From positions 1 through 64,000 of the IMG/VR virus record IMGVR_UViG_3300006931_000029: a DNA stretch of 64,000 nucleotides, one strand, 5' to 3'. The notes below the pieces were generated by a model. It was not told where the DNA came from. It ran no database searches and saw nothing but the letters and a program-made list of their open reading frames with translations. This document shows, in pieces, positions 51,806-63,563 of the stretch. The position numbers and the translations under genes were made by a program. Within the stretch, counting starts at the first letter, position 1. Each line of letters opens with the position of its first letter.

Positions 51806-52462
51806 TCACTTTTTCTTCGGGATCAAGAAGTGTCTCCAAGTCGGGTGCTTAATGTCGCGCATCATTGCGCAGCGCGGCACCTTCTTCGGAGCGATCGGTG
51901 TCCTGATAAGCTTTAGACCAACCTCGTGCGGTAGCTTGTTGCTCTTTTCGCTGTTGATCTTCGGCTTGCACCAGACAAGATTCTCGAACGTGTCTTTGCC
52001 ACCCTTGTCGCGTGGAACAACGTGGTCGAGATTTCCAGCAGAACCGATGTATTCACCGGAGTACTGGCAAACGCCGCCGTCACGCTCGCGAATGCTCTTC
52101 GAGTTTGGCCTCGGAGTGTAATCCGGCATGCCAGCGTAGTTGCACGCAACTACGATCGTTGGAACGCGAATGCGTCCACCGTTTGGAGCACCGTCTCGGA
52201 GACTCGTCTGGATGAACAAGTCCCACGGACGAATCGGCAAAGCGATCCAGTCCTCCCACGCAGTCGGGTGGGCTTTGGTCAGCTTGTCCGTCGGCTCACC
52301 GTTCTCGTCGAGAACAAAGTCAAGATCGAGCGCGTAAACCGGCGGCTCGCCGTTCAAACCAGACGTGAGCGACGTGATTGCCTTCTTAACCGTGTAGTGG
52401 TTAATCGGCTGCCAGAGCTTGTTTAGAGCTAGGACGATGGTCTTGTTTAGGACTTCGCTCAT
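51806..52462 (-). CDS. HNH endonuclease
   Basis: VLALN..WQP, RD...CQYSG, NLDHVVP...GG....ENLV, N..K.N. Confidence 0.88.
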   Translation of the reverse strand: MSEVLNKTIVLALNKLWQPINHYTVKKAITSLTSGLNGEPPVYALDLDFVLDENGEPTDKLTKAHPTAWEDWIALPIRPWDLFIQTSLRDGAPNGGRIRVPTIVVACNYAGMPDYTPRPNSKSIRERDGGVCQYSGEYIGSAGNLDHVVPRDKGGKDTFENLVWCKPKINSEKSNKLPHEVGLKLIRTPIAPKKVPRCAMMRDIKHPTWRHFLIPKKK

Positions 52463-52507
52463 GGTGGTATGGGTGAAAGAATATGGTGCGCACCGCCTTT
52501 TGAATAA

Positions 52508-52549
52508 GAATAAAAATAGAAGAGGGCGGTCCGTTTCCAGACCGCCCTC
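52508..52549 (-). terminator. Terminator after the Ro60 gene
   Basis: 10-bp GAGGGCGGTC/GACCGCCCTC stem followed by a T-rich tract on the minus strand. Confidence 0.7.
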
Positions 52550-52565
52550 GAAGTGAACTAGGGCT

Positions 52566-54047
52566 TTACTCAGCCTTCTCGGATCGCTCCGGAAGGGTGA
52601 ACTCAACCTTCTCGATGGTGTGAACCATCGCGTCCTTGTCCTGTTCCAGGAGCGACATCATCTTGAACAGCTTGTCTCCGGCGAAACCAGCGATCGCAGC
52701 CACGCGGTCCTCCGGGAAGGCCATCGTGCCCTGACCGTTTAAGTCGAAGCTGTAGACGAACGGCTTCACGCCGAACTTGCGCGTGTAAGCCGACATTGCC
52801 GAGTTGGCGTTACCTGCTCCCATGCCGCCGACCCACGTCTGCATGTCCGAGAGGATCAGCACGCGCGAGTACTTGCGGTTCATTGCCTGGATTGCTGCTG
52901 GCATGTTCGTGCCACCACCGCTGAACTGGAACCCGCGAGACAGTGACATGGTCGAGTCCTTTCGGTTGTAGTTCACGTAGTGGGCAGAGTCGTCGAAACG
53001 GATCAGGTCCGCATCCCACGCCTTGCAGATAACAGCCGCAAAAATCGATGCGATCTGAGACGGCTTGCCGGCCATCGAACCAGAAACGTCGAGGAACACG
53101 ACAGAGTCGCCCTCTAGCTTCGGAACGTTGCCGCAGGACAGGTCGATTGCGTCGTCCAGCGCACCCATAACCTTTCGGGTAGCAGATGCGTTGAGACCGC
53201 CAACGACCTCGTATGCGGTGTGAATCTGGAACGGGAACACGAGGCTCTTGTGGATGGCGTCCGCGTTGCGAAGCTGGTCGCACACGGCATCGATCAACTC
53301 GCTGTCAGCACCCGCGAGGATGTTGCGCAGATTGCGAATCAATGCCAGATAGCCGAGCTTCTTCTCGCGAATCAGCGCGGCCCATGCGGCGGCCTTCAAC
53401 TCCGCCTTGTTCTCGTCGCTCTCAGCGGCTTGACCGGCCTGCGTGAGCTTGGTCTCCCACGTGTCGGCCGGCTGGAGCTTGCCAGTCATCAACAGCTTCA
53501 ACGCCGGAGTCTCCTTCGGGCGAAGCAAGTTGACTGCGTCGATCAGCTTGAACGGCTGGCCGTCTCGGCGATACTTTGCCAGAGCGTAGGCGTCATAGCG
53601 CTGTAGCGCCGCGCCGAGACCCTTCTTCAGGGAGTTCGGAATCGGCTTGCCGTAGGTCGCCATGTAATACGCGAGAATCTCCACCGGGTCGTCGGCACGA
53701 CGAGAAACACGGTTGAAGAAGTCCTTCGTCCATGCCTCACCCTTGACAGTCTTCGCGATCTCGCCGGCCACGATGTGGCTGATCGAGCGCATGCCGAACT
53801 CGTTACGAGCGAAGACGGCGGCCTTTGCCGCGAAGAGCGGGTCGACCTTCTGGAGGAGTTCCTTGACCCGCACGATTGTGCCGGACTCGGAACGATAAAA
53901 TTGATCCTGAACAAAAGTCGTCAGCAAAATGCTGACAAACTCGAGCTTTGAGGACTGGGAATATCCCGGTCCACCTGCTGCGTTGGTGACAACGGTCCTG
54001 CCTGGGACCTTGCGTGCCACCTTCGCGGATGATGCGAACTTAGCCAT
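52566..54047 (-). CDS. rsr: Ro60/TROVE-domain RNA-binding protein (TROVE + vWA)
   Basis: N.AGG..Y, FY, AR.EFGMR, Y.LAKY, TWE..L, ALIRNLRN, S.V.PF, DVSGSM, GGT, SDMQ; AAGGA RBS. Confidence 0.92.
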   Translation of the reverse strand: MAKFASSAKVARKVPGRTVVTNAAGGPGYSQSSKLEFVSILLTTFVQDQFYRSESGTIVRVKELLQKVDPLFAAKAAVFARNEFGMRSISHIVAGEIAKTVKGEAWTKDFFNRVSRRADDPVEILAYYMATYGKPIPNSLKKGLGAALQRYDAYALAKYRRDGQPFKLIDAVNLLRPKETPALKLLMTGKLQPADTWETKLTQAGQAAESDENKAELKAAAWAALIREKKLGYLALIRNLRNILAGADSELIDAVCDQLRNADAIHKSLVFPFQIHTAYEVVGGLNASATRKVMGALDDAIDLSCGNVPKLEGDSVVFLDVSGSMAGKPSQIASIFAAVICKAWDADLIRFDDSAHYVNYNRKDSTMSLSRGFQFSGGGTNMPAAIQAMNRKYSRVLILSDMQTWVGGMGAGNANSAMSAYTRKFGVKPFVYSFDLNGQGTMAFPEDRVAAIAGFAGDKLFKMMSLLEQDKDAMVHTIEKVEFTLPERSEKAE

Positions 54048-54199
54048 GGTGTTTTTCCTTTGTTTGACTGCCACGCGGAATGCGTGGAGAATAGTTGACG
54101 CTACGGACGTTTTTGAAATTGTAAACAAAAATTTGGCGCTCGAAATGCGTTACAGGCTTCGCAATCCGATTACGGTGCCACACGCCAAACATTGCAAGA

Positions 54200-54275
54200 T
54201 GGAGCCCGCTGCCGGAATTGCACCGGCCATCTCTGGAGTACAAAGCCAGGGTCTCGCTCACTAAACGTAACGGGC
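54200..54275 (-). tRNA. tRNA-Thr(UGU)
   Basis: Hand-folded cloverleaf, encoded CCA, UGC T-loop. Confidence 0.85.
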
Positions 54276-54364
54276 AAATGACATCGCACGCGCATGTTGT
54301 TACAGCAAGCGTACCCACTGCGAAACGGTTTAGCGCTTCGATCTGCATTTCGTGCGAAGATGAT

Positions 54365-54441
54365 TGGTGGACCCAGTGGGATTTGCACCCACGATCAAAG
54401 AATTATGAGTTCTCTGCTTTGGACTGCTAAGCTACAGGTCC
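54365..54441 (-). tRNA. tRNA(CAU), probably Ile2
   Basis: GGACCUG acceptor, CU-CAU-AA loop; Ile2 versus Met inferred from body sequence. Confidence 0.8.
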
Positions 54442-54447
54442 AACAAG

Positions 54448-54804
54448 ATGATTTCTAGCCAAAGAAAAATTGTCAAAGAAAAGTTGATATTTCATCGCGG
54501 TCATAGATGCGAAGGTTGCCAGGGCACTCAATGGCGAGGAAAACCAATCCCTTTGGAACTTCATCATGAGACTGACAGTGACGAAGAAAAGGACCTTCAG
54601 CTTCTGTGTCCTAACTGTCACGCTCAAACCCCGAACTATCGAGGGCGAAACAAGAAAGCTGGAAAGATTTGGAGCAATCTCTGCTCGTGCGGTAATCGAA
54701 AACACGTGTGTTCCCCGAGTTGCAGAAGTTGTGGCGCGAAAAGAAGATGGAATGGTGCCCTTGGAGGGAGTTGCACCCTCACGACATGCGTCACTAAGGT
54801 TTAA
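54448..54804 (+). CDS. HNH (homing-type) endonuclease, antisense within the tRNA array
   Basis: CEGC, LELHH, LLCPNCHAQT. Confidence 0.75.
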   Translation: MISSQRKIVKEKLIFHRGHRCEGCQGTQWRGKPIPLELHHETDSDEEKDLQLLCPNCHAQTPNYRGRNKKAGKIWSNLCSCGNRKHVCSPSCRSCGAKRRWNGALGGSCTLTTCVTKV

Positions 54805-54836
54805 GCAAAGCGCGTCTCCTTTTCCGCCACAAGGGC
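54753..54836 (-). tRNA. tRNA-Leu(UAA)
   Basis: Long variable arm, CCA. Confidence 0.85.
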
Positions 54837-54840
54837 AAGT

Positions 54841-54926
54841 TGGTGCCGGCGACAGGAATCGCACCTGCATGGCCCGAAGACCGCTGGATTTTGAGTTCAG
54901 TGTGTATCCTATTCCACCACGCCGGC
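54841..54926 (-). tRNA. tRNA-Leu(CAA)
   Basis: Long variable arm, CCA. Confidence 0.9.
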
Positions 54927-54931
54927 AAAAT

Positions 54932-55008
54932 TGGTGCCCTCGGCGGGACTCGAACCCGCAACCTCGAGGTTAGAAAGCTCTTGCTCTAGTCCATTGAGCT
55001 ACGAGGAC
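54932..55008 (-). tRNA. tRNA-Arg(UCU)
   Basis: Canonical GG D-loop and UUC T-loop. Confidence 0.9.
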
Positions 55009-55013
55009 AAAAT

Positions 55014-55090
55014 TGGCGCCTCAGACAGGACTCGCACCTGCAACCTGCAGTTTAGGAAACCGCCGCTCTATCTAGTTGAGCTACTGAGAC
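55014..55090 (-). tRNA. tRNA-Arg(CCU)
   Basis: Cloverleaf, CCA. Confidence 0.9.
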
Positions 55091-55094
55091 AAAT

Positions 55095-55180
55095 TGGTGC
55101 CCGCGACAGGAATCGCACCTGCATGGTTTTTCAACCACTAATTTCTAAGACTAGCGTGTCTACTGTTCCACCACGCGGGC
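55095..55180 (-). tRNA. tRNA-Leu(UAG)
   Basis: Long variable arm, CCA. Confidence 0.9.
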
Positions 55181-55185
55181 AAAGA

Positions 55186-55248
55186 TGGAGGGAGCGTCCG
55201 TGCTCGGCACCCTGAGCGCTCAGCCACAACCTCAAGCTGTGGACTCCC
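55186..55248 (-). ncRNA. 63-nt CCA-ended mini-cloverleaf
   Basis: GGGAG.../...CUCCC-U-CCA closing three hairpins; no D/T consensus. Confidence 0.5.
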
Positions 55249-55259
55249 ATTTTCAAAAT

Positions 55260-55333
55260 TGGCTCCCGACCAAGGATTCGCACCTTGGCAAAACGAGTCA
55301 GAGTCGTTTGTGCTACTGTTACACCAGTCGGGA
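55260..55333 (-). tRNA. tRNA-Gln(CUG)
   Basis: U1-A72, G73, CCA. Confidence 0.9.
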
Positions 55334-55334
55334 A

Positions 55335-55429
55335 TGGCGGAGGTGAGCAGGTTCGCACTGCGCCGAGCTTTACCCCGGGCCATGTTTAGCAAACATGTGG
55401 GACTCCTAGTTGTCCACCTTTCTACCTCC
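55335..55429 (-). tRNA. tRNA-Ser(GCU), atypical 8/4 fold
   Basis: 8-bp acceptor with bulged A, 4-bp T stem, long variable arm, G73. Confidence 0.8.
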
Positions 55430-55433
55430 AAAA

Positions 55434-55508
55434 TGGTGCCCGCACCGGGAATCGCACCCGGCTCTCCGCCTTGAGAGGGCGGCGAACTAACTGATATTCG
55501 ATGCGGGC
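55434..55508 (-). tRNA. tRNA-Glu(CUC)
   Basis: Cloverleaf, CCA. Confidence 0.88.
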
Positions 55509-55513
55509 AAAAA

Positions 55514-55598
55514 TGGTCGGCATGACAGGAATCGCACCTGCACGGATTTTATCCAACGCCTTCTGAGGACGCCGTGTCTACTGTTCCACCACATGCCG
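55514..55598 (-). tRNA. tRNA-Leu(CAG)
   Basis: Long variable arm, CCA. Confidence 0.9.
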
Positions 55599-55603
55599 AA
55601 AAA

Positions 55604-55679
55604 TGGTCCTCGCTGTAGGATTCGCACCCACAACTTCCTCCGTGTGAAAGAGGCACTCTAACTGTTGAGTTAAGCGAGG
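55604..55679 (-). tRNA. tRNA-Val(CAC)
   Basis: Cloverleaf, CCA. Confidence 0.9.
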
Positions 55680-55683
55680 AAAA

Positions 55684-55878
55684 TTATTCGACGGCTTCGC
55701 AGATGTCGCGAATGAGGGCAAAGTATGCGATGCATTCACCACCTAGTTTCGTCCCTGGAAGAGCATACTGTCCTGAGCATTGGCGCTCGAGGATAGTCCC
55801 CTTTGGGTAAGCAATGCCGACCTTCAAGTCTAGGTAGTCTTCAGTCAGTTGGACCGTTGCTGGTTTTTGAGTCATCAC
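55684..55878 (-). CDS. Small hypothetical protein inside the tRNA array
   Basis: Fills the gap between RNA genes, same strand. Confidence 0.5.
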   Translation of the reverse strand: MMTQKPATVQLTEDYLDLKVGIAYPKGTILERQCSGQYALPGTKLGGECIAYFALIRDICEAVE

Positions 55879-55892
55879 TTTTAGAATAAATC

Positions 55893-55974
55893 GTGCAGAA
55901 AGCGAAGGGCTGTTCGTTGGTTAGTCGCCGTTGAACAGGTAGCATCGTTGGACCCGGACTAACGGGTTCTGCAC
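55893..55974 (-). ncRNA. Three-way-junction RNA with potential kissing loops
   Basis: 8-bp terminal stem; loops carry GUUAGUC and GACUAAC. Confidence 0.55.
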
Positions 55975-55978
55975 AAAG

Positions 55979-56071
55979 TGGCGGAGAGGTGCAGGTTCGC
56001 ACTGCGCACGATTAAACGTGTCCGAGTTTTCGAGGCTCGTGGGACTCCTGATTGTCCTCCTTACTCTCTCC
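55979..56071 (-). tRNA. tRNA-Ser(CGA), atypical 8/4 fold
   Basis: Same architecture as Ser(GCU). Confidence 0.8.
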
Positions 56072-56072
56072 G

Positions 56073-56162
56073 TGGCGGAAGGTAAAGGAGTTGCACCCTA
56101 GCCGGTTTCCCGACTGATCCGCTTTCCAAGCGGTCCCCACTCTACAGCAGGTCCTACCTTCC
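56073..56162 (-). tRNA. tRNA-Ser(GGA)
   Basis: Long variable arm, G73, irregular D arm. Confidence 0.78.
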
Positions 56163-56166
56163 AAAG

Positions 56167-56244
56167 TGGTGCACGCGGAGGGATTTGAACCCCCAACCCT
56201 TCGTTCCGAAGACGAATGCTCTGGTCCAATTGAGCTACGCGTGC
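56167..56244 (-). tRNA. tRNA-Arg(UCG)
   Basis: Canonical elbow, CCA. Confidence 0.9.
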
Positions 56245-56245
56245 A

Positions 56246-56333
56246 TGGCGGAAGGTGTAGGATTCAAACCCACGGCCGGTTTCCCGACTCCGAGGTTCAA
56301 GCTCGGTGCAATAATTCGCTCTGCCAACCTTCC
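56246..56333 (-). tRNA. tRNA-Ser(UGA)
   Basis: Long variable arm; UUUGAAU T-loop with GA in the D-loop. Confidence 0.88.
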
Positions 56334-56340
56334 AAGTTTT

Positions 56341-56546
56341 CGAACCAGTGTAGCCTGGATTCTGTTTTATCCGCACATTTCTCTAAGCCGCTACCACGAC
56401 GTTTGAACGGGAAGCACTACCCTGACGTCTTAATTTGCGTTGCACCTACCGAGGTCCGCGAGCGTTAACTCTCCCTCGTGCTGCTTTGGTGTCCTAGCTT
56501 CCTCAGGCCGATACACTTTCTCGACCCGCGTGCAGTCCTGTATTCG
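56341..56546 (-). ncRNA. rnpB: Minimal RNase P RNA-like gene
   Basis: Ordered motifs GAGGAAGCUAGGAC, GCAACGCAAAU, UAGAGAAAUG, AAACAGAAUCCAGGCUA; the ends pair as P1. Confidence 0.72.
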
Positions 56547-56961
56547 AAGATGGTTCTTGCGCCAATTTGATGCTAAAAACATCAAAAATGCTGCCGATTG
56601 ATTCAGGCGAAAAGTCTGACGGTTTTCGAATCATGACGGCAAAATCGATCTTGCGCACGGCATCTATCAATTTTTCGTCAATATATCCGGACACAATGCT
56701 GACCGGAGTCATTATTTTGTTGGCTCTCATTTCCCGAAAAACGTCTAAGCCGCTACCATCTGGTAGCTTCATGTCCAACAGCACCACGTGAAACTCTCGC
56801 TGCGCCAGTTGATTGATCGCTTCCTGGCACGTCTTAGCCCAGAACACGTGGCATCTGTAACTCTTTGAGGCGTTAATCAACAACTCCGCCAGTAGCTCAT
56901 CGTCCTCAACGAGAAGCACGTCTTTTATGAGATTCTTAGCGTATTCCGCAAGAGTTTTCAT
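56503..56961 (-). CDS. Single-domain response regulator (REC/CheY-like)
   Basis: VLLVEDD, LLDMKLPDGSG, VSG, KP. Confidence 0.88.
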   Translation of the reverse strand: MKTLAEYAKNLIKDVLLVEDDELLAELLINASKSYRCHVFWAKTCQEAINQLAQREFHVVLLDMKLPDGSGLDVFREMRANKIMTPVSIVSGYIDEKLIDAVRKIDFAVMIRKPSDFSPESIGSIFDVFSIKLAQEPSSNTGLHAGRESVSA

Positions 56962-57006
56962 TAAAACAAATATAGACCATGGAACGACGAACCGTTCCCT
57001 GAGAAG

Positions 57007-57080
57007 TGGCACCCGCGCAAGGATTCGCACCTTGGCAAAGTGAGTCAAAGTCACTTGTGCTACTGTTACACCACACGGGT
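57007..57080 (-). tRNA. tRNA-Gln(UUG)
   Basis: Cloverleaf, CCA. Confidence 0.9.
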
Positions 57081-57275
57081 AAAAACCCCGTCGACGGTCC
57101 GCGATCCATCTGGCAGGCAGGCGCATTACGACTCAGCGACGATCAATCGCCTACCGTGACTCGGTCGACTACGAATCTGCGTCCCCTGAACGGAGACAAA
57201 AGCTTTGCCGGCGGCGATCGCATCCGCAGCTTGGGTTCCTCGAGCTCGCCCAAGACTTGCTACTCATCGGCAAAA

Positions 57276-57351
57276 TGGTCCTCGCGGCAGGATTCGCACC
57301 TGCGACCTCTTCCATGTCAAGGAAGCGCGCTAACTGCTGTGCTACGCGAGG
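57276..57351 (-). tRNA. tRNA-Val(GAC)
   Basis: Cloverleaf, CCA. Confidence 0.9.
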
Positions 57352-57352
57352 A

Positions 57353-57429
57353 TGGCTCCGGCAGAAGGGTTCGCACCTTCATCTTCTCGGTTAACAGCCG
57401 AGCGCTCTACTAAGTTGAGCTACACCGAA
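57353..57429 (-). tRNA. tRNA-Asn(GUU), copy with A18/G55 elbow
   Basis: Cloverleaf, G73, CCA. Confidence 0.88.
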
Positions 57430-57435
57430 ACAAAA

Positions 57436-57512
57436 TGGTCCTCTCAGCCGGAGTCGCACCGACAACCTCGTCCTTCGCAGAGACGCGCTCTATCTAGTTG
57501 AGCTATGAGAGG
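57436..57512 (-). tRNA. tRNA-Arg(GCG)
   Basis: Loop CU-GCG-AA. Confidence 0.88.
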
Positions 57513-57516
57513 AAAT

Positions 57517-57593
57517 TGGGGCGGCTAACGGGATTCGCACCCGCGGTCCTCTGATTCACAATCAGATGCTTTTACTGCTAAGCTATAGCCGCC
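57517..57593 (-). tRNA. tRNA-His(GUG)
   Basis: Encoded G-1 and C73. Confidence 0.9.
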
Positions 57594-57599
57594 ATAAAT

Positions 57600-57684
57600 T
57601 GGTGCGGATAGGGAGAATCGCACTCCCATGGCTGTCAACCGTTACGTTCTCAACGTAGTGTGTCTACTGTTCCACCATATCCGC
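57600..57684 (-). tRNA. tRNA-Leu(GAG)
   Basis: Long variable arm, CCA. Confidence 0.9.
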
Positions 57685-57854
57685 AAGAGCTGGGATTTGC
57701 ACCCTTTACCGCCTCGCTCAGGCGTCTTGTCCGACGATGACTTTTGCTACTCGCAACCATCGTCATTATTTTAGGTTGCTTTGGCGCACCACCGACTGAT
57801 CCTTCGAGAGCTGACGACAGCATTAAGGACCCTCTATGAACAAAATGAACAAAA

Positions 57855-57930
57855 TGGAGCCTAAGAAGGGATTTGCACCCATGACCCACGCTTTACGAAA
57901 GCGTTGCTCTACTAACTGAGCTACTTAGGC
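57855..57930 (-). tRNA. tRNA-Thr(CGU)
   Basis: Cloverleaf, CCA. Confidence 0.9.
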
Positions 57931-57934
57931 AAAG

Positions 57935-58159
57935 TTAAGCTTCACCGCCTCGAGGCGGTGCGGGACGCTTGATCCCAAAGGTTAGGTTCTCGAATGCCCT
58001 ACAGTCGTTCGAGTCAATGGACTTGAACCTGCCGTCATCTAGCTGAACCAAGAAAATTGGATTGTGGTCGATGCCGTAATCGATCATCAGGATTGCGCGT
58101 CCAGGACCGAGAGGTGTCTGCACCCATATCGGCGCTGAGAACTCGTGGGTAATGGTCAT
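57935..58159 (-). CDS. Small conserved phage protein inside the tRNA array
   Basis: 74 aa, TPLG.G.A...IDYG..HN. Confidence 0.6.
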   Translation of the reverse strand: MTITHEFSAPIWVQTPLGPGRAILMIDYGIDHNPIFLVQLDDGRFKSIDSNDCRAFENLTFGIKRPAPPRGGEA

Positions 58160-58179
58160 TCCACTACCAGAACGCAAAA

Positions 58180-58255
58180 TGGAGCTGAACATGGGACTTG
58201 CACCCATCATCACCTGCTTACCAAGCAGGGTCCGCGCTATCTCGGAGTGATCAGC
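58180..58255 (-). tRNA. tRNA-Thr(GGU)
   Basis: Cloverleaf, CCA, atypical D arm. Confidence 0.85.
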
Positions 58256-58257
58256 AA

Positions 58258-58344
58258 TGGTCCGCCTGGAAGGACTTGCACCTACGTAGACCCGAAGGTC
58301 AATGCGTTTACAGCGCATCGCAATTGCTACTCTGCCACAGGCGG
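58258..58344 (-). tRNA. tRNA-Tyr(GUA) with C1-G72
   Basis: Long variable arm, A73. Confidence 0.9.
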
Positions 58345-58349
58345 ATAAA

Positions 58350-58425
58350 TGGAAGCACCGACGGGATTTGCACCCGTGACCTTGGGCTTATGAGTCCCGC
58401 GCTCTACTAACTGAGCTACAGTGCC
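58350..58425 (-). tRNA. tRNA-Met(CAU), elongator-like
   Basis: GGC acceptor start, CU-CAU-AA. Confidence 0.82.
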
Positions 58426-58433
58426 ACTGAGAA

Positions 58434-58523
58434 TGGTGGAACGGGAGGGACTTGCACCCCCGACGGTGGGTTCACCACATGGGCTTAAAAGGCCCGACCA
58501 ATCGCTGCTATGGGGACCGTTCC
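58434..58523 (-). tRNA. tRNA with Lys anticodon (UUU) and a long variable arm
   Basis: CU-UUU-AA loop; GUGG/CCAC variable stem. Confidence 0.8.
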
Positions 58524-58529
58524 AAAAGT

Positions 58530-58604
58530 TGGCTGGGAAGGTTGGGATCGAACCAACGACCATCGAGTTAACAGCTCGCCGCTCTGCCACTGAGCTACAT
58601 CCCA
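58530..58604 (-). tRNA. tRNA-Asn(GUU), canonical-elbow copy
   Basis: GG D-loop, UUC T-loop. Confidence 0.9.
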
Positions 58605-58612
58605 ATGAAAAA

Positions 58613-58798
58613 TTTGCCTTGGCGTGGACCTTCAGCAGTGACCGCAGTCCAACCTCGCTTTTCCCGCTGAGCTTTCTGTTTCGACCGAAGTCTTCCGCCG
58701 CGATGTCTCGAACGACCAGGCCGGTATTAGCGACCCGAAGCGGTATGAACAACCTAGCGCGCCACACTTGAGTCTCCCTCGTAGAGCTCCAAGGCAAA
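58613..58798 (-). ncRNA. ~186-nt structured RNA of unknown family
   Basis: 10-bp terminal pairing UUUGCCUUGG/CCAAGGCAAA, UUCG-capped hairpins, fills the tRNA gap. Confidence 0.55.
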
Positions 58799-58799
58799 A

Positions 58800-58875
58800 T
58801 GGCGGGAATGAAGGGATTCGCACCCTCGGTCTCTTGCGTGACAGGCAAGCGCTTTAACTGCTAAGCTACACCCCC
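58800..58875 (-). tRNA. tRNA-Asp(GUC)
   Basis: G73, CCA. Confidence 0.9.
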
Positions 58876-58882
58876 GTGAAAA

Positions 58883-58990
58883 TGGTTGAGGCCCAGCTTG
58901 TCGTCTGCGCTATGCCCAGCTGGAATCGAACCGAGTCTAGTTAGGGACTTGCACCCCGCTTCGCGACAAGATCGCACCGCACGATCCTCA
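58883..58990 (-). ncRNA. CCA-ended RNA with two T-loop hairpins
   Basis: UGAGG/CCUCA-ACCA, CUUGUCG/CGACAAG, GGG-UGCAAGU-CCC and GG-UUCGAUU-CC. Confidence 0.6.
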
Positions 58991-58994
58991 AAAA

Positions 58995-59071
58995 TGGTCC
59001 GGACGACAGGATTCGCACCTGCGGCCTCTTGATCCCAAATCAAGCGTTCTACTAGGCTGAACTACATCCGG
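58995..59071 (-). tRNA. tRNA-Pro(UGG)
   Basis: C1-G72, A73. Confidence 0.9.
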
Positions 59072-59077
59072 ATAAAT

Positions 59078-59187
59078 TGTGCCGAAGACGTTTCTGCATT
59101 TGTAAGCCACTTGGTTCCCTGCGGGAATTGCTGGTAACAGGGAGACGGTTTCGAACCCGTGTCTTCATGACCCCCATCGCTGACACA
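59078..59187 (-). ncRNA. Circularly permuted tRNA-like RNA on a terminal stem
   Basis: UGUGUC/GGCACA ends, GAAGAC/GUCUUC, T arm first, then UCCCUG..ACCA..CAGGGA. Confidence 0.5.
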
Positions 59188-59191
59188 AAAG

Positions 59192-59270
59192 TGGGAGCAG
59201 GAGTTGGATTTGAACCAACGATTTCGACCTTATGAGGATCGCGAGGACGGCCATGCTCCTCTACCCTGCC
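59192..59270 (-). tRNA. tRNA(CAU), initiator-like body
   Basis: A11-U24 D stem, UUCAAAU; lacks the three G-C anticodon-stem pairs. Confidence 0.75.
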
Positions 59271-59421
59271 ACAAAAAGATTATTGACACGACTCGCACGG
59301 ACCATCGTCTAAGTTGCAAGTTTTTGGCTTCTCGCCTTCAGGCGCAGGAGCATCTTGCACGAACTCGCCGATGTCGTCATCGGGAGACAGAGTCGACGGT
59401 TTTGGATCAGTCATGCGCTAT

Positions 59422-59598
59422 CTACAAGTTCAATCCGTGCAGAACTCCGATTTTGTCCAGCGCATAAACCACGAAGATCAGAGCCAAGATAGCACCGATG
59501 ATTTTCAACGGCGTACCTTGAGCGAACTGACCAGCTACCCAGAAGATCAGGTAGAGCACGAGACCGACTATGAGGATGACGATTAGTGATTCGATCAT
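59422..59598 (-). CDS. 58-aa two-helix membrane protein
   Basis: Two hydrophobic segments; GAGGAGG upstream. Confidence 0.7.
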   Translation of the reverse strand: MIESLIVILIVGLVLYLIFWVAGQFAQGTPLKIIGAILALIFVVYALDKIGVLHGLNL

Positions 59599-59634
59599 GG
59601 TAAACAGACATAGTCTGCCCCTCCTCGTTCCAAA

Positions 59635-59710
59635 TGGTGGGAACAGCTGGAGTTGCACCAGCGACACGCAGATTTTCAGTCTGCTGCTCTACTGACTGAG
59701 CTATGTCCCC
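59635..59710 (-). tRNA. tRNA-Phe(GAA)
   Basis: Cloverleaf, CCA. Confidence 0.92.
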
Positions 59711-59714
59711 AAAG

Positions 59715-59847
59715 TGGTGGGAAGTGCAGGATTCGAACCTACTTGCTTGGCTTTTCAGGGCTTTGCTTTTCCGAAGTAACCCAGTCGGTCACTGCGATCT
59801 TGCGACCGAGAATTAGGTGACTAGGTGTTGTCTTGTTAAGACTTCCC
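59715..59847 (-). ncRNA. tRNA body with Y-like module replacing the anticodon arm (chimera 1)
   Basis: GGGAAGU/ACUUCCC-ACCA, T arm, internal ..UUCUC-GGUC-GCAA-GAUC-GCAGUGA-N9-UUACUUC. Confidence 0.72.
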
Positions 59848-59851
59848 AAAG

Positions 59852-59927
59852 TGGCACGGACGGCAGGAATTGCACCTGCGACCTGGAGATTTGGAGTTTC
59901 CCGCTCTACTAATTGAGCTACGTCCGT
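59852..59927 (-). tRNA. tRNA-Trp(CCA)
   Basis: A1-U72, G73. Confidence 0.9.
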
Positions 59928-59928
59928 A

Positions 59929-60004
59929 TGGAGAGGGATGTCGGAATTGCACCGACGCATGACGCTTTTGCAGAACGTTGCCTTTCTGACTTGGCTAATC
60001 CCTC
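59929..60004 (-). tRNA. tRNA-Cys(GCA)
   Basis: U73, CCA. Confidence 0.88.
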
Positions 60005-60008
60005 AAAG

Positions 60009-60083
60009 TGGTGGAAGCAGTGGGACTTGCACCCACAACCCTTCGCTTAAGAGGCGAGAGCTCTACTATTGAGCTATACTTCC
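60009..60083 (-). tRNA. tRNA-Lys(CUU)
   Basis: Cloverleaf, CCA. Confidence 0.9.
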
Positions 60084-60088
60084 AAAAA

Positions 60089-60218
60089 TGGTGCGCGCGC
60101 CTGGATTCGAACCAAGTCTAATCTTTTCGTAGAAGAAGTAACCCAATCGGTCACTGCGTCTTGCGACGAGAATAAGGTGACTGAGATATTTGTTGTGCTA
60201 CCATTACACTACACGCGC
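60089..60218 (-). ncRNA. tRNA body with Y-like module in the anticodon arm (chimera 2)
   Basis: Intact acceptor, D and T arms plus CCA; permuted module closed by a GCAA loop. Confidence 0.75.
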
Positions 60219-60225
60219 AAAAGCT

Positions 60226-60360
60226 TTCCGAGAGAAAAACGAGGACGGTAGAAGACGCGGTGTTAAGTCGCGTTGCCCAACCATTAGGCGTATTCTCCAG
60301 TTTTGGCGGAGGATATTGGATTTGAACCAATGAAGTAACCGTTTCTCTCACTACTCGGAA
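60226..60360 (-). ncRNA. YrlA-like RNA with a permuted tRNA domain
   Basis: UUCCGAG/CUCGGAA ends, UAGUGA..UUACUUC, then T arm, acceptor 3' strand + GCCA, spacer, acceptor 5' strand, D arm. Confidence 0.72.
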
Positions 60361-60362
60361 AA

Positions 60363-60490
60363 TGGTGGACTGCACGAGATTCGAACTCGGACGCTCGCCC
60401 CCGTAGGGCCGCGAGCGGTTCTACCTGCCGTGGCGGACGGATTGATTACCGTCGGACTTGATTCGTCGTTACGCGTTGGCGATACAGCCC
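60363..60490 (-). ncRNA. 128-nt tRNA-like RNA with Ala identity and no anticodon arm
   Basis: GGGCUGU/GCAGUCC-ACCA (G3-U70, A73), UUCGAAU T arm. Confidence 0.65.
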
Positions 60491-60494
60491 GAAA

Positions 60495-60572
60495 TGGTCG
60501 GTCTGGCCGGATTCGCACCGGCGATCTTTCCGCCCCGAACGGAACGCGATAACTAGGCTACGCTACAGACCG
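60495..60572 (-). tRNA. tRNA-Pro(CGG)
   Basis: C1-G72, A73. Confidence 0.9.
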
Positions 60573-60576
60573 AAAA

Positions 60577-60652
60577 TGGTCCTCCCGATAGGATTCGCAC
60601 CTACGACCCCACGCTTATCAAGCGCGTGCTCTAACTGCTGAGCTACGAGAGG
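60577..60652 (-). tRNA. tRNA-Ile(GAU)
   Basis: Cloverleaf, CCA. Confidence 0.9.
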
Positions 60653-60656
60653 AAAA

Positions 60657-60792
60657 TGGTGCAGCGTGTAGGATTCGAACCCACGTAAGCGGTTTGGATT
60701 TGAAGTAACTCAATCTTCACTGCGTCTTGCGACGAGAAAAGTCAGACTGAGACTTGTTAGGACCGCTGTCCTGGCCACTAGACGAACGCTGC
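60657..60792 (-). ncRNA. Complete tRNA body with Y-like module inserted in the anticodon loop (chimera 3)
   Basis: Anticodon stem GCGGU/ACCGC intact around the module. Confidence 0.78.
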
Positions 60793-60800
60793 AAATTTTT

Positions 60801-60929
60801 CCGTGAGAACAATGGACTGGGAGGTGAAGACCTTTCGGCCCTCGGGTGGAATTGAACCACCATTGATTCCTTAATAGGGAATTGCTTTACCATTAAGCAA
60901 CGAAGTATCCCATATTCCTCACTGCACGG
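60801..60929 (-). ncRNA. Y-like RNA enclosing an unpermuted D/anticodon/T cloverleaf
   Basis: CCGUG/CACGG ends, CAGUGA..AUACUUC, then D arm, AUUCC-CUAUUAA-GGAAU and T arm. Confidence 0.7.
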
Positions 60930-60939
60930 AAATTGTAAT

Positions 60940-61001
60940 CGGGAGAAAAGAATGTCGACGGGTGTATTTCCCCAAGAAGTATCCGTAGACGTCACTACCC
61001 G
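60940..61001 (-). ncRNA. Minimal Y-like module
   Basis: CGGG-UAGUGA..AUACUUC..UUUUCU-CCCG. Confidence 0.7.
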
Positions 61002-61010
61002 AAAAAGCTC

Positions 61011-61082
61011 TCTGCGAGAATAAAGTGGACTCGGTGTTTTTCGATGTTGATGTTGAAGTAACCGAACCCGTCACTGCGCAGA
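61011..61082 (-). ncRNA. Minimal Y-like module
   Basis: UCUGCG-CAGUGA..UUACUUC..UAUUCU-CGCAGA. Confidence 0.7.
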
Positions 61083-61085
61083 AAT

Positions 61086-61162
61086 TGGTGGACCGGATGG
61101 GAGTTGCACCCACCACACGGTGCTTGCAAAGCACTGTCGCCGCTAACGGTACATGCCGGCCC
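61086..61162 (-). tRNA. tRNA-Ala(UGC)
   Basis: G3-U70, irregular D arm. Confidence 0.85.
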
Positions 61163-61169
61163 AATAAAG

Positions 61170-61247
61170 TGGTGCGTCAAGAGGGAATTGCACCCACGAC
61201 ATCCTCTTTGGAAGAGAGGTGCTCTAAACTAACTGAGCTATTGACGC
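61170..61247 (-). tRNA. tRNA-Gly(UCC), A73
   Basis: GCG acceptor start, CU-UCC-AA. Confidence 0.9.
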
Positions 61248-61251
61248 GAAA

Positions 61252-61311
61252 CGGGAGAAAAGTCGACAAGGTGTTTTTCATACAAAGAAGTAACCCTGTC
61301 ATCACTGCCCG
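61252..61311 (-). ncRNA. Minimal Y-like module
   Basis: CGGG-CAGUGA-UGACAGGG-UUACUUC..ACCUUGUCG-ACUUUUCU-CCCG. Confidence 0.7.
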
Positions 61312-61315
61312 AAGA

Positions 61316-61394
61316 TGGTGCGTGTGGCGGGATTCGCACCCACGAAATCCTCGTTGGCAACGAGGCGCTGTAGACTAGGCTGAGCCACACACGC
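61316..61394 (-). tRNA. tRNA-Gly(GCC), A73
   Basis: Cloverleaf, CCA. Confidence 0.9.
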
Positions 61395-61398
61395 AAAT

Positions 61399-61474
61399 TG
61401 GTGCCCGCGACGAGATTCGCACTCGTGTTCTCGCCTTGAAAGGGCGGCGTCCTGGTCTCCTAGACGACGCGGGC
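61399..61474 (-). tRNA. tRNA-Glu(UUC)
   Basis: Cloverleaf, CCA. Confidence 0.9.
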
Positions 61475-61475
61475 A

Positions 61476-61549
61476 TGGCGCACGAGGATGGAATTGAACC
61501 ACCGACCAACCAGTGGAAACCGGCTGCTCTTTCTCTGAGCTACTCGTGC
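61476..61549 (-). tRNA. tRNA-like gene with 6-nt anticodon loop (undetermined)
   Basis: GCCGG-UUUCCA-CUGGU; other arms intact. Confidence 0.65.
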
Positions 61550-61785
61550 AAAATTGTTCGGGCAGAGGCTGTCAAAGCATTTAACGCATCGCGCACCTCT
61601 GCCCTAGTTTTCTATATTCAAAAGAACGATACACACCTTCGACAACTCTTAGTTGAGTCTATTGGTGACCGTGTTGGCCCCGATAGCTATTCCCATCGTT
61701 TGTCTGGCCTAGATGGGTTGCCAGGAGGGATTTTACCCTCAGAGTTGACCGGCTTGCGCCGGAAAGTTGTTTGAATTCAGATACG

Positions 61786-61817
61786 AAAAAACCCGACCTC
61801 TTGCGAGAGTCGGGCTC
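61786..61817 (-). terminator. Intrinsic terminator (attenuator) upstream of the tRNA array
   Basis: GAGCCCGACUCUC-GCAA-GAGGUCGGG-UUUUUU. Confidence 0.85.
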
Positions 61818-61847
61818 AACTAAACCTAAGGTTCCTTTTCTGGCTAC

Positions 61848-61994
61848 CTAGGCGGTTGAACCCTCCTCGATGGGCAAATTATGCCCTTGGGTCGTCTTCG
61901 CGCTACGGCTTTCATATCCGGCCGACAGCACGACGCCGCAATCCTGGTTAAACCAGGTTTTTGGCTGTATCGATACTGTTGATCTTAAGGACAT
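61848..61994 (-). CDS. 48-aa leader peptide (pan-codon attenuator uORF)
   Basis: MSLRSTVSIQPKTWFNQDCGVVLSAGYESRSAKTTQGHNLPIEEGSTA*; its last codons are complementary to the terminator 5' arm. Confidence 0.7.
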   Translation of the reverse strand: MSLRSTVSIQPKTWFNQDCGVVLSAGYESRSAKTTQGHNLPIEEGSTA

Positions 61995-62123
61995 GGAAAG
62001 TGAAGATTGGTTGGTTGAAAATTTGGTGCGAGCTGATTTATCTACTCGCGTCGTGTGAAACTGGAAGAACTTAGACTCTTAGGACCAAGATTTGGTCCAG
62101 GCTGACAAGGTTAATTTGGAAAT

Positions 62124-62209
62124 TGGTGGCGAAAGAAGGGATCGAACCTCCGACCTGGTCGTCCATTTTTAAGGTGGCCGTCCATGCTCTACCGCTAAGC
62201 TATTTCGCC
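62124..62209 (-). ncRNA. tRNA-like RNA with extended anticodon arm
   Basis: Perfect acceptor, D and T arms plus CCA; ~29-nt anticodon arm. Confidence 0.65.
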
Positions 62210-62212
62210 GAC

Positions 62213-62282
62213 TTTCAAGAGAACACCGAGGAAACAGGAACAATCCAGATTACTACGGCCAAAACCTGGCGTTCTCTTGAAA
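62213..62282 (-). ncRNA. Long-stem RNA (15-bp terminal helix)
   Basis: UUUCAAGAGAACGCC/GGUGUUCUCUUGAAA. Confidence 0.45.
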
Positions 62283-62283
62283 T

Positions 62284-62357
62284 TGGAGCCGACCGGGGAT
62301 TAAGAAACACCCCTCTTCCGTCCCATGGGACGGCGTGCGCGGTTACACTATGACGGC
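62284..62357 (-). ncRNA. Degenerate tRNA-like RNA with collapsed anticodon loop
   Basis: CCGUCCC-AU-GGGACGG, 11-nt T-loop, CCA. Confidence 0.55.
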
Positions 62358-62363
62358 ATAAAG

Positions 62364-62469
62364 TGGTGCCAAGGCCGACATCGCTGCCGGCGGCGAAACC
62401 CTGCCCGCTGCATTAGTCGCGTCCGAAGACACGTCGAGAGCAGTGGCGTTTGATTCCACGGGGCTTGGC
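62364..62469 (-). ncRNA. 106-nt CCA-ended tRNA-like RNA with a long central arm
   Basis: GCCAAG/CUUGGC-ACCA; central helix capped by CUUCGG. Confidence 0.55.
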
Positions 62470-62475
62470 ATAAAT

Positions 62476-62830
62476 TGGTGGAGATGGCGGGAGTTGAACC
62501 CGCGTGCTAAAAGAGAACCGAATCTGAGTCTACGCGCGTGTCCTATTTTAATGTCCAGGCGGACCTATCTTTGGCTGAGTTTTTGAGTTCCGCCTCAGCC
62601 GGCAGCGAAATCAGTAGCGTAGTTTTTACGCAGCACGATCTACCCCGCTCATCTTAATCGTGCCACGCGCAGCCTAATTAGGCCGCGAGACGGAGCTCGT
62701 TGGAACGAGCGAACGCCTTGACAATGGTGTTGCCATTTGTGGTTTGCCAAGTCTTGTTATGGAGGTCGACCTAGCAGTCTCCAGCGCGCATCAGGTATCT
62801 GTCTCCTAAAGTAGAATCCAGAACATCCCC
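62476..62830 (-). ncRNA. ssrA: tmRNA, tag (A)GNTIVKAFARSNELRLAA
   Basis: GGGGAUG/CAUCUCC-ACCA with G3-U70, GGAUUC 5' motif, T arm, tag ORF 62678..62734 ending LAA-TAA. Confidence 0.93.
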
Positions 62831-62883
62831 AGTGCTATGTCAAAAGAACTTATCGACGACCGAAGTCACCGACAACGTCGCAG

Positions 62884-62914
62884 AGTTTACTGCTCAATGA
62901 GTCAATGTAAACAA
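62884..62914 (-). promoter_or_regulatory. Sigma70-like early promoter heading the RNA island
   Basis: TTGTTTAC-N17-TAAACT; the same motif recurs at other operon starts. Confidence 0.6.
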
Positions 62915-62927
62915 AAAAGATGCGTTC

Positions 62928-63563
62928 TCACGCATTTTGTTCAACTGGCCGAACGCCGTGAATTCCCTGCTTCAGGACATACCAGTAGAGTTTTCCTTCG
63001 AGTCGAATCTGGTTGGCGCGGCTCTTGTCGACGTAAATTTTGTCGCCGATCTTGATTTGGGCGAGCACCGGGTCTTCGCTCGATGGCAGAAGATTTCCGA
63101 TTTGCACGACCTCAAACTCTGGAGGTGGAATGGCCGAATCCGGCAGATAGAGACCGCCGATCATGTCGATCTTGATGTCACGAACGAGCACCCAGTCGCC
63201 GAGCACATGAAAATTTTCAAGCGTGATCTGCGGAGAATCCAGCTTCGCGAATGCGTCTCCTTGATGCATGATCATCACGGGCTGACGACGGTCACCTTCA
63301 CCGACAAAATGGGTCACGCCCATTTCGAACATCTTGTTGCATTGGTAGATGACGATGTCGCCGACCTTGACGGCAATTTCGACCGTGTCTCCGATGGACG
63401 CAACTCGGCCAAGCCGATGGACTTGGTTGGCATTGGAGGGCATCAGGATGATGCCAGTCGCTTCTTCCTGCACAGCGGTGAGAGCGACTCGGTGTTTGAC
63501 TGGACGCACGCAGCTTCTCAGGTCAATCTCTGCGGGTTTGAAAGGGACGACGTTGGAACTCAT
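62928..63563 (-). CDS. Tandem GroES-like co-chaperonin
   Basis: Two repeats: RP..HRV..GIILMP..V.SIG..VKVGD and LGDWVLV..GGLYLP..VVQIG..IKIGD. Confidence 0.8.
   Translation of the reverse strand: MSSNVVPFKPAEIDLRSCVRPVKHRVALTAVQEEATGIILMPSNANQVHRLGRVASIGDTVEIAVKVGDIVIYQCNKMFEMGVTHFVGEGDRRQPVMIMHQGDAFAKLDSPQITLENFHVLGDWVLVRDIKIDMIGGLYLPDSAIPPPEFEVVQIGNLLPSSEDPVLAQIKIGDKIYVDKSRANQIRLEGKLYWYVLKQGIHGVRPVEQNA

Follow-up and report, generated by a model that had tools for sequence, protein, structure and literature searches.

The stretch of DNA analysed here, which we call the window, comprises bases 1-64000 of the IMG/VR virus record IMGVR_UViG_3300006931_000029 (64,000 nucleotides) and carries an RNA-gene block of about 11 kb in which a transfer-messenger RNA (tmRNA), a tRNA array, Y-like RNA modules, a miniature ribonuclease P (RNase P) RNA and a Ro60 gene are found together. 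The record is a complete virus genome of 224,954 bp with direct terminal repeats and a G+C content of about 53% throughout, and syntenic relatives have the block flanked by portal, baseplate and other phage genes. The block is part of a jumbo phage genome and not an element integrated in a chromosome. Sequence of the phage occurs in rhizosphere and soil metagenomes.

All of the block lies on the minus strand except for one HNH gene on the plus strand. Along the minus strand, a GroES-like gene is followed by a short hairpin, a promoter-like site, the tmRNA, tRNA-like RNAs, a leader with a terminator, and the tRNA array with its Y modules; at the Ro60 end, a second promoter-like motif precedes Ro60, a terminator and an HNH_4 gene. 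The miniature RNase P RNA sits within the array, with 13 of the tRNAs called at default settings downstream of it. Every part named in an earlier, sequence-only reading of the same DNA was recovered at or near the place it had been given, all on the minus strand, and the order proposed there holds except for the RNase P RNA, which lies inside the array and not after it. The block is nevertheless neither wholly one-stranded nor made up of RNA genes alone, since it also contains a receiver-domain gene, a small open reading frame and a further HNH gene (54448-54804), the last of these on the plus strand. In what follows, L002, L004 to L009, L042 and L043 denote related phage loci, G000 the whole phage genome, and L010 (Ereboglobus luteus CP023004.1, 1717129-1730664) and L011 two cellular loci of the Opitutaceae. 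The cassette is syntenic in L004, L006 and L007. Megablast and blastn searches with the block against 50,697 phage records returned no match.

The Ro60 gene (52566-54047, minus strand) encodes a protein of 493 amino acids with a TROVE domain (Pfam 59.8 bits, threshold 23; PHROG 850, E 9e-38) and a vWA-like part that scores just under threshold (VWA_CoxE, 24.1 bits against 26.4). It is 52-54% identical to the Rsr proteins of Opitutaceae (Verrucomicrobiota), its homologues being named 60 kDa SS-A/Ro by their sources. The HNH_4 protein encoded next to it (51806-52462, minus strand; Pfam HNH_4 30.9 bits) is a conserved neighbour of Ro60 that also follows it in L004, L006 and L007, and is 47% identical over its full length to the E. 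luteus HNH protein encoded between rsr and rtcB. Both cellular loci contain, in this order, a divergent LysR-type gene, a tRNA array (7 and 13 tRNAs), Y modules, TROVE, HNH_4 and RtcB, with other genes interspersed among these parts in one of them. We know of no earlier description of a cellular Ro60 locus with tRNA arrays in this layout. The same modules and HNH gene in phage and cellular loci point to shared ancestry with the cellular Ro60/RtcB RNA-damage locus, and the Ro60/Y/HNH part of the phage block is, as judged from sequence, homologous to the Opitutaceae locus. Relative to the latter, the phage version has lost RtcB, expanded its tRNAs to a full set and gained a tmRNA and the miniature RNase P RNA. 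A more distant Ro60, 46% identical to that of the window, is encoded by the 634-kb phage LR745206.1, in which the gene is not accompanied by tRNAs and an RNase P RNA was not found.

That no RtcB is visible in the window had already been remarked, and this extends to the whole 225-kb genome in a family search that did not cover RtcA, RtcR, other RNA ligases or PNK. The wider search of the genome that had been advised for RtcB, RnpA and SmpB was negative throughout: family searches, in which aminoacyl-tRNA synthetases were not included, found no SmpB (PF01668), RnpA or CCA-adding enzyme. The earlier suggestion of a response that replaces rather than repairs fits the cellular comparison, in which Ro60, Y modules and HNH are shared and the phage has more tRNAs and lacks RtcB.

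The minus strand carries eight Y-like modules from 59714 to 61316, and the remainder of the genome contains one chance-like match to their pattern. They share AGUGA and GUUACUUC. The first half of the core consists of an outer stem, AGUGA, a variable loop of 7-10 nt, G(G)UUACUUC and an insert, and the second half of GAAAAACA, a segment complementary to the variable loop, UUnUUCUC and the return strand of the outer stem. Across 58 instances from seven phage and two cellular loci, pairing of the loop with its cognate partner together with the outer stem gave a mean of -19.2 kcal/mol, as against -9.4 kcal/mol for non-cognate partners, and the cognate partner was within the best 5% in 44 of the 58. 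The AGTGA...TTACTTC repeats were also considered as CRISPR-like or DNA-level promoter repeats, which was rejected because the variable loop covaries with its distant partner.

Three topologies were distinguished among the modules: stand-alone type I, type I with a tRNA-like insert (60795-60933 and 60222-60362) and type II. Type I modules occur at 61248-61316, where the module is a stand-alone one, and at 61006-61085, 60933-61006 and 60795-60933; the insert is short in three of these copies, and the fourth (60795-60933) encloses a tRNA-like body with D, anticodon and T arms, which ARAGORN miscalls as tRNA-Asn(att). The three type II copies are chimeras with a normal open acceptor stem and NCCA end; a circularly permuted module stands in place of the anticodon loop, and a GNRA loop caps the outer stem of this module. 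That at 60657-60792 has a tRNA-Glu-like body, an acceptor stem, ACCA and a 63-nt permuted module; those at 60089-60218 (Rfam tRNA 37 bits) and 59714-59851 (tRNA-like ends with ACCA; L004 orthologue 88% identical) combine a tRNA-like body or ends with a capped module. Type II acceptor stems covary among orthologues, and scanning IMG/VR for exact copies of the type II core motif yielded no match. The remaining module, at 60222-60362, has inside the Y stem formed by its two ends first a T arm, then a closed acceptor-like hairpin whose loop contains GCCA, and finally a D arm; by reading and by cognate stem pairing this is the published arrangement of YrlA (PMC4201824), from which the other seven modules differ. 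Orthologues of this RNA are present in L004, L005, L006, L008 and L009, and its topology is shared with a cellular element that weakly matches Rfam YrlA.

The association of these modules with Ro60 is drawn from cellular genomes. In E. luteus and a second genome, four to five copies lie upstream of rsr, one cellular module enclosing a match to Rfam YrlA (33 bits, E 0.001, threshold 69). Among 61 genomes of the Opitutaceae family, six have a strong TROVE match, and in each of these the Y motif shares contig and strand with it and lies 0.3-1.3 kb upstream; clustered copies occurred in none of the genomes that lack such a match; eight isolated singletons in other genomes approximate the rate of the reversed-pattern control. 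By the nearness criterion published for YrlA, namely location within 4 kb of Ro60 on the same strand (Chen 2014, PMC4201824), the cellular modules would be Y RNAs as far as sequence and position can assign them, the modules of the window lying farther from Ro60. The Y-like RNAs of the sequence-only reading are, by way of the cellular loci, supported as real Ro60-associated elements.

The tRNA array (54365-61549, minus strand) contains 36 tRNAs called by ARAGORN at default settings, three called only at a lower threshold (Ala-TGC, 61086-61162; Thr-GGT, 58180-58255; Ser-GGA, 56073-56162) and a few recognised by Rfam, giving a total of 39-42 that covers all 20 amino acids; the previous count of 41 was about right. 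The CCA end is encoded in 35 of the 36 default-called tRNAs, which is not a special feature of the phage, since the likely host family as a rule encodes CCA in its housekeeping tRNAs too (30 of 30). More distinctive is the T loop, where positions 54-56 read UGC, with G55, instead of UUC in 29 of the 36. Over seven phage arrays the proportion is 165 of 205 distinct tRNAs (about 80%), and in 146 of these 165 the GG of the D loop is missing as well, UCAGUCAGUAGA for example standing in place of the housekeeping UCAGUUGGUAGA. The cellular Ro60-linked arrays (L010 4034-5354; L011 2221-4469) have the UGC T loop in 17 of 20 tRNAs, and as in the phage the D loop there has AG in place of GG, while UUC together with GG is found in 29 of the 30 E. 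luteus housekeeping tRNAs. With positions 18 and 55 assigned by their place in the sequence, the tertiary pair of the elbow looks to have covaried from G18:U55 to A18:G55. In the Y RNAs and the tmRNA, the tRNA-like domains retain the canonical UUC. A literature search found no description of tRNAs of the A18:G55 type.

An origin of the phage tRNAs by copying from the cellular Ro60-linked arrays was rejected, as their identity to the housekeeping tRNAs of the likely host family (72-88%) exceeds that to the Ro60-linked tRNAs. The shared elbow therefore appears to have been selected, rather than inherited as a block.

The miniature RNase P RNA (56335-56548, minus strand; 214 nt) matches Rfam RF00010 over model positions 1-367 with large deletions (46.9 bits, E 4e-12). 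From class A it keeps P1, P2, P3, P4, P5 and P15-P17, the GGU of L15, GAGGAA (CR-I), ACAGAA (CR-V) and, at J18/2, UAGAGAAAUG. The specificity domain (P7-P14) is lost, model segments of 15, 15 and 110 nt being reduced to 11, 7 and 14 nt (32 nt in total), and P18 is absent. Homologues are present in seven other phage loci (L004, L005, L006, L008, L009, L042 and L043), which with the window make up four sequence types, and across these the core motifs and the L15 GGU are invariant. Pair statistics were computed on six phage homologues with a structure that includes the P4 pseudoknot. In these, 94% of cells were paired and 16 of 46 pairs had changed on both sides, a number of compensatory pairs reached by none of 500 shuffles; controls with slid partners were at most 40% paired. 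Seven of the ten P1 pairs were compensatory, and P4 was paired in 90% of cells with one compensatory pair. An invariant core combined with compensatory helices indicates a functional RNA, not a decaying fragment.

In relatives this RNA begins 2 nt after tRNA-Gln and ends 1 nt before tRNA-Ala. In the window it abuts tRNA-Ser, so that its 3' end would come from RNase P cleavage, and a receiver gene separates it from tRNA-Gln. The suggestion that it is a recent fragment of a host rnpB was rejected: E. luteus has a normal rnpB of 483 nt (187 bits), with which the universal core alone aligns. Megablast and blastn found no match to the RNA in the phage records named above, and a literature search found no report of a phage-encoded RNase P RNA. 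The sole viral case that came to light is an RNase P-like RNA in camelpox virus, for which a decoy role instead of an enzymatic one has been discussed (PMC3001073).

The tmRNA (62476-62830, minus strand) was called by ARAGORN and by Rfam (RF00023, 95 bits, threshold 47). Its tag, GNTIVKAFARSNELRLAA*, ends in LAA and is identical in L004, that of the host family being GNYEEMPLAA; its 3' end is CCACCA. No phage-encoded SmpB accompanies it, and host SmpB would be needed. A promoter-like site lies 54 nt upstream (62884-62914, minus strand), a sigma-70-like match in which TTGTTTACA is followed after 16 nt by TAAACT; a second motif, TTGTTTACA with 16 nt and TAGCGT (54098-54128, minus strand), lies 50 nt before the start of Ro60. 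A generic sigma-70 scan was at chance level overall. The 9-mer TTGTTTACA, however, occurs 31 times in the 225-kb genome against about two occurrences expected by our own estimate of chance, usually after a run of T and mostly 25-45 nt before a start codon. It, or its 8-mer core TGTTTACA, is present in the window at 2369, 8676, 27568, 28216, 40000, 47474, 54128 and 62914, and no copy of TTGTTTACA was found inside the tRNA array. We take it to be, probably, the -35 region of a class of phage promoter, often situated on very short leaders.

Between the tmRNA unit and the array lies a non-coding leader of 574 nt (61550-62123, minus strand) that is 73-80% identical in L004, L006 and L007 and whose hairpins keep their pairing through compensatory changes. 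Its first part (61815-62123), a structured stretch with such changes, gives way to an intrinsic terminator, CCCGACTCTCGCAAGAGGTCGGG followed by six T (61786-61814), that is conserved in all four aligned phages and whose 5' arm shares sequence with the 3' arm of the conserved hairpin before it. The second part (61550-61785) contains an invariant GUCGAAGG at 61643 corresponding to the Y RNA motif GNCGAAN0-1G as defined in PMC4201824. A further intrinsic terminator with a 12-bp stem follows Ro60 (52512-52549, minus strand). Searches of 52000-63600 against Rfam at E 1 matched the leader to no T-box, riboswitch or other family, and no conserved antiterminator was identified. The promoters and terminators of the sequence-only reading are borne out, the TTGTTTACA motifs lying at 62914-62884 and exactly at 54128-54098 and both terminators being found, as is the order of promoter, tmRNA, tRNA-like RNAs, leader and array that places the tmRNA upstream of leader and terminator. 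Its single operon is not supported in view of the strong terminator-like hairpin between the tmRNA unit and the array, the promoter motif of Ro60's own and the gene on the opposite strand. The sensor it proposed likewise finds no support in a leader that offers conserved hairpins and a terminator, with no T-box or riboswitch recognised by Rfam.

The invariant GUUGUCGAAGGUGUGUAU at 61629-61646 of the leader includes the GNCGAAN0-1G Ro60-contact motif. It resembles the 5' strand of animal Y RNAs. This element could be a further Y RNA of another type.

Taken together, these features make it reasonably probable, in our estimation, that the block is a cassette for translation maintenance and RNA quality control, which probably keeps translation going during infection. 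The array would be transcribed as long precursors that start either at the TTGTTTACA promoter upstream of the tmRNA or at some unrecognised promoter beyond the leader terminator. Cuts by RNase P at tRNA 5' ends would then free the tRNAs, the Y chimeras with tRNA bodies and the miniature RNase P RNA itself, which ends 1 nt before a tRNA. This activity may be supplied both by the host enzyme and by the catalytic-domain RNA of the phage, which keeps the CCA-binding L15 loop and could borrow host RnpA. Where infection leaves host tRNAs cleaved, depleted or ill-matched, phage tRNAs would take their place, and the tmRNA would free stalled ribosomes with host SmpB. Bound to the Y modules, Ro60 may act in the quality control or decay of RNA, with host PNPase or the HNH nuclease encoded next to it as possible partners, and the ligation step by which RtcB repairs RNA at the cellular locus would have been dropped. 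We infer catalysis by the miniature RNase P RNA, binding of Ro60 to the modules, polycistronic transcription with processing, and a benefit to the phage. Precedents that support such a cassette are the co-occurrence of Ro60 and YrlA in phages and the cleavage of a YrlA by RNase P (PMC4201824).

Several observations weigh on the other side. The leader terminator separates the upstream promoter from the array, and the only sequencing runs that are possibly RNA are two of unknown kind, which yield 150-270-nt contigs at 2-4x over genes and spacers alike; the other runs with phage sequence are DNA metagenomes. The RNase P-like RNA, at 46.9 bits, does not reach the Rfam threshold of 100, and in the subgroup that includes the window its P4 contains an A.A mismatch. 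It was not found in L007 within the 10 kb upstream of Ro60, so it would seem to be dispensable in some phages. The Y modules of the window gave no match to Rfam YrlA (RF02553) even at E 10, and the GNCGAAN0-1G motif is absent from all eight, its one occurrence being that in the leader at 61643. They also lie 5.7-7.2 kb upstream of Ro60, on the same strand, a distance that is at most 2 kb in phage L009. Finally, the assignment of the Opitutaceae as the likely host family is drawn from Ro60 similarity alone.

A plainer account of the block is that of codon supply, by which a jumbo phage carries a tRNA set to offset differences in codon usage and late decay of host tRNAs, with Ro60, the Y modules and the RNase P-like RNA as passengers that have no joint function. 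Big phages commonly carry many tRNA genes in an array along with a tmRNA, those of mycobacteriophages being an example (PMC5966550), and the affinity of the phage tRNAs to host-family housekeeping tRNAs (72-88% identity, nearest of those compared) speaks for such supply, as do an array content that differs among relatives and an L007 locus without the RNase P-like RNA. We nevertheless judge this unlikely. The combination of tRNA array, Y modules, Ro60 and HNH recurs in the two cellular loci examined and in at least seven phage loci; moreover, the non-tRNA RNAs are maintained by compensatory change, and the shared A18:G55 elbow links the tRNAs to Ro60 loci specifically. A narrower doubt concerns the RNase P-like RNA, which could be no enzyme at all but a decoy that ties up host RnpA or pre-tRNA. 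Alternatively, an old rnpB fragment might have given rise to it as a structured spacer or a processing signal. Its score below the Rfam threshold, the missing specificity domain and P18, and the P4 mismatch in the window subgroup would suit a non-enzymatic RNA, and the camelpox RNA offers a parallel in being discussed as a possible decoy (PMC3001073). Against it stand a core and L15 GGU that are invariant in four sequence types and helices that covary, as expected of a working catalytic core. RNase P RNAs that lack the specificity domain, such as the type T of Pyrobaculum and isolated bacterial catalytic domains with protein, are moreover active, and on balance we hold a non-enzymatic role to be rather improbable.

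More elaborate than the cassette for translation maintenance and RNA quality control that we favour is a two-tier stress operon, after the constitutive and stress-induced tiers of the sequence-only reading, in which tRNA mimics and leader would sense translation stress and open an attenuator, the tmRNA being constitutive and the tRNAs, Y RNAs and RNase P RNA induced. The succession of promoter, tmRNA, tRNA-like RNAs, leader, terminator and array on which it would depend is real and conserved in four phages, the 5' arm of the terminator overlaps the preceding conserved helix as in attenuators, and no TTGTTTACA motif occurs within the array. Yet the leader matched no T-box or other riboswitch model and showed no conserved antiterminator, and phage middle or late promoters of another type may follow the terminator. 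We regard regulation of this kind as quite improbable.

The altered elbow invites a further and more speculative proposal within the cassette reading. Among the factors that recognise the elbow or T loop of a tRNA are the specificity domain of RNase P, TruB and some contact-dependent toxins, and an altered elbow could, speculatively, make tRNAs insensitive to what targets canonical ones. A18:G55 might thus mark a separate pool of spare tRNAs that goes with Ro60, Y RNAs and HNH in Opitutaceae cells and phages and is insensitive to a reader of the canonical G18:psi55 elbow or T loop. With such a pool the phage, which has tRNAs for all 20 amino acids as well as a tmRNA, and whose RNase P RNA is free of the elbow-reading specificity domain, would be able to translate on its own tRNAs while canonical host tRNAs are cleaved or deliberately destroyed. 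The reader could be a toxin that cuts the T loop, surveillance that depends on TruB, or the Ro60/HNH machinery. We advance this as a doubtful proposal, more likely wrong than right.

Several ingredients of the block are already known, notably phage arrays of tRNA and tmRNA and phage Ro60 with YrlA (PMC4201824, PMC5966550, PMC7824862). In mycobacteriophages of the Bxz1/ET08 type, sets of tRNAs and tmRNA come with YrlA-like RNAs and an orthologue of Ro60 (Pedulla 2003, as cited in PMC4201824; Chen et al. 2014, PMC4201824; PMC5966550); these phages resemble the present one in being large, with many tRNAs, a tmRNA, Ro60 and tRNA-like Y RNAs on the same strand. They belong to a different lineage, however, and the present block has not one or two YrlA but eight modules of three topologies, none of which matches the Rfam YrlA model, and in addition the miniature RNase P RNA, the HNH partner and A18:G55 tRNAs. 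The rsr-yrlBA-rtcBA operon of Salmonella (PMC4201824, PMC7790460) is similar in having Ro60 with upstream Y RNAs on one strand, and the Opitutaceae homologue likewise ends in RtcB. The phage differs from it in lacking RtcB (RtcA and RtcR were not searched), and the Opitutaceae loci differ in their upstream divergent LysR-type gene, tRNA arrays and HNH_4, of which the arrays and HNH_4 are not features of Salmonella.

With the camelpox RNA (PMC3001073), as with archaeal type T of Pyrobaculum and isolated bacterial catalytic domains, the miniature RNase P RNA shares a length of about 200 nt and a core of P1-P5, P15 and P4 without P7-P14; unlike them, it has bacterial class A features, is phage-encoded, and lies in a tRNA array, abutting tRNAs on both sides in relatives. 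The tRNA array units described from mycobacteria, plasmids and phages (PMC5966550, PMC12803027) are comparable as dense clusters of some 30 or more tRNAs on mobile DNA for which anti-defence or translation back-up has been proposed, whereas here and in the two cellular Opitutaceae loci the array is tied to Ro60 and Y RNA and to a covarying change of the elbow. What appears to be new is the phage RNase P RNA without a specificity domain, the family of Y modules in three permutations on tRNA bodies, the tie between Ro60 and a tRNA array in a cellular lineage, and the A18:G55 elbow.

If active, the miniature RNA would be a natural bacterial-type RNase P RNA without the specificity domain, and useful for asking what that domain is for. 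The Y modules extend bacterial Y RNAs to a lineage missed by the current Rfam model, and tRNA bodies appear to be joined to a single Ro60-associated stem in three circularly permuted forms. The link between Ro60, array and elbow provides a testable handle both on the function of bacterial Ro60 and on the reasons for which mobile elements carry whole tRNA sets.

A number of smaller elements accompany the main ones, all on the minus strand of the window. Two short structured RNAs ending in CACCA (62364-62470) and CTCCA (62284-62358) follow the tmRNA; their folds, read by eye, make them possible tRNA mimics, and they are weakly conserved in L004 and recognised by no model. The tRNA-like RNA at 62124-62209 has a 9-nt anticodon loop (AAA), a canonical elbow and an encoded CCA (Rfam tRNA 48.2 bits); ARAGORN calls it at low threshold only, and calls its L004 orthologue tRNA-Phe(aaa). 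Within the array, two paralogous tRNA-like RNAs of about 95 nt end in GCCA (55979-56072 and 55335-55429), the first with copies 94-97% identical in L004, L007 and L002. These RNAs, conserved at that level in three relatives, have an acceptor-like stem, a UGC-type T arm and three internal hairpins, and are recognised by no tRNA model. A degenerate tRNA with an 8-nt anticodon loop (54200-54275; Rfam tRNA 35.2 bits) occupies a position at which relatives carry tRNA-Thr(tgt). Other odd anticodon loops are those of 61476-61549, a 6-nt loop called 'tc', and of 58438-58523, a long-arm tRNA with a UUU-type loop, while L007 has at 2081-2158 a tRNA-like gene with a 4-base 'gcaa' anticodon. Genes of this sort could be decoys, frameshift suppressors or decaying copies.

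Among the protein genes around and within the block, the GroES-like gene (62928-63563, minus strand) encodes a protein of 211 amino acids that has a GroES (Cpn10) domain at its C terminus and no match to its N-terminal half. It lies directly upstream of the RNA block, a position kept in L004, L006 and L007. An open reading frame for 58 amino acids between tRNAs (59422-59598, minus strand), hydrophobic by eye, possibly encodes a small membrane protein; it has no family match, and its DNA is conserved in L005, where a gene of 60 amino acids is called. The stand-alone receiver (CheY-like) gene (56503-56961, minus strand; Pfam Response_reg 65 bits) is situated between tRNA-Gln and the RNase P-like RNA, which its last 46 nt, stop codon included, overlap; it also gives a weak match to cREC_REC, the cyclic-phosphate-processing receiver family (18.8 bits). 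The plus-strand gene at 54448-54804 encodes a homing-type endonuclease (PHROG 14736 HNH endonuclease, E 1.1e-14) and sits in a 311-bp stretch of the tRNA array that is unmatched in relatives. Neither the receiver gene nor this HNH gene has a match in relatives, and for that reason both look like recent additions. In L007, whose Ro60 is 71% identical to that of the window, the array comprises tmRNA, tRNAs and Y modules together with a gene for a TylF-type methyltransferase.

Far from the array and outside the window, the phage genome has a tRNA with a CUA anticodon, called tRNA-Pyl by ARAGORN (G000:C1:132581-132656, plus strand), and L004 has a CUA-anticodon tRNA inside its own array (9426-9503). 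The CUA tRNA is a possible amber suppressor, and TAG may be read through or recoded in some phage genes.

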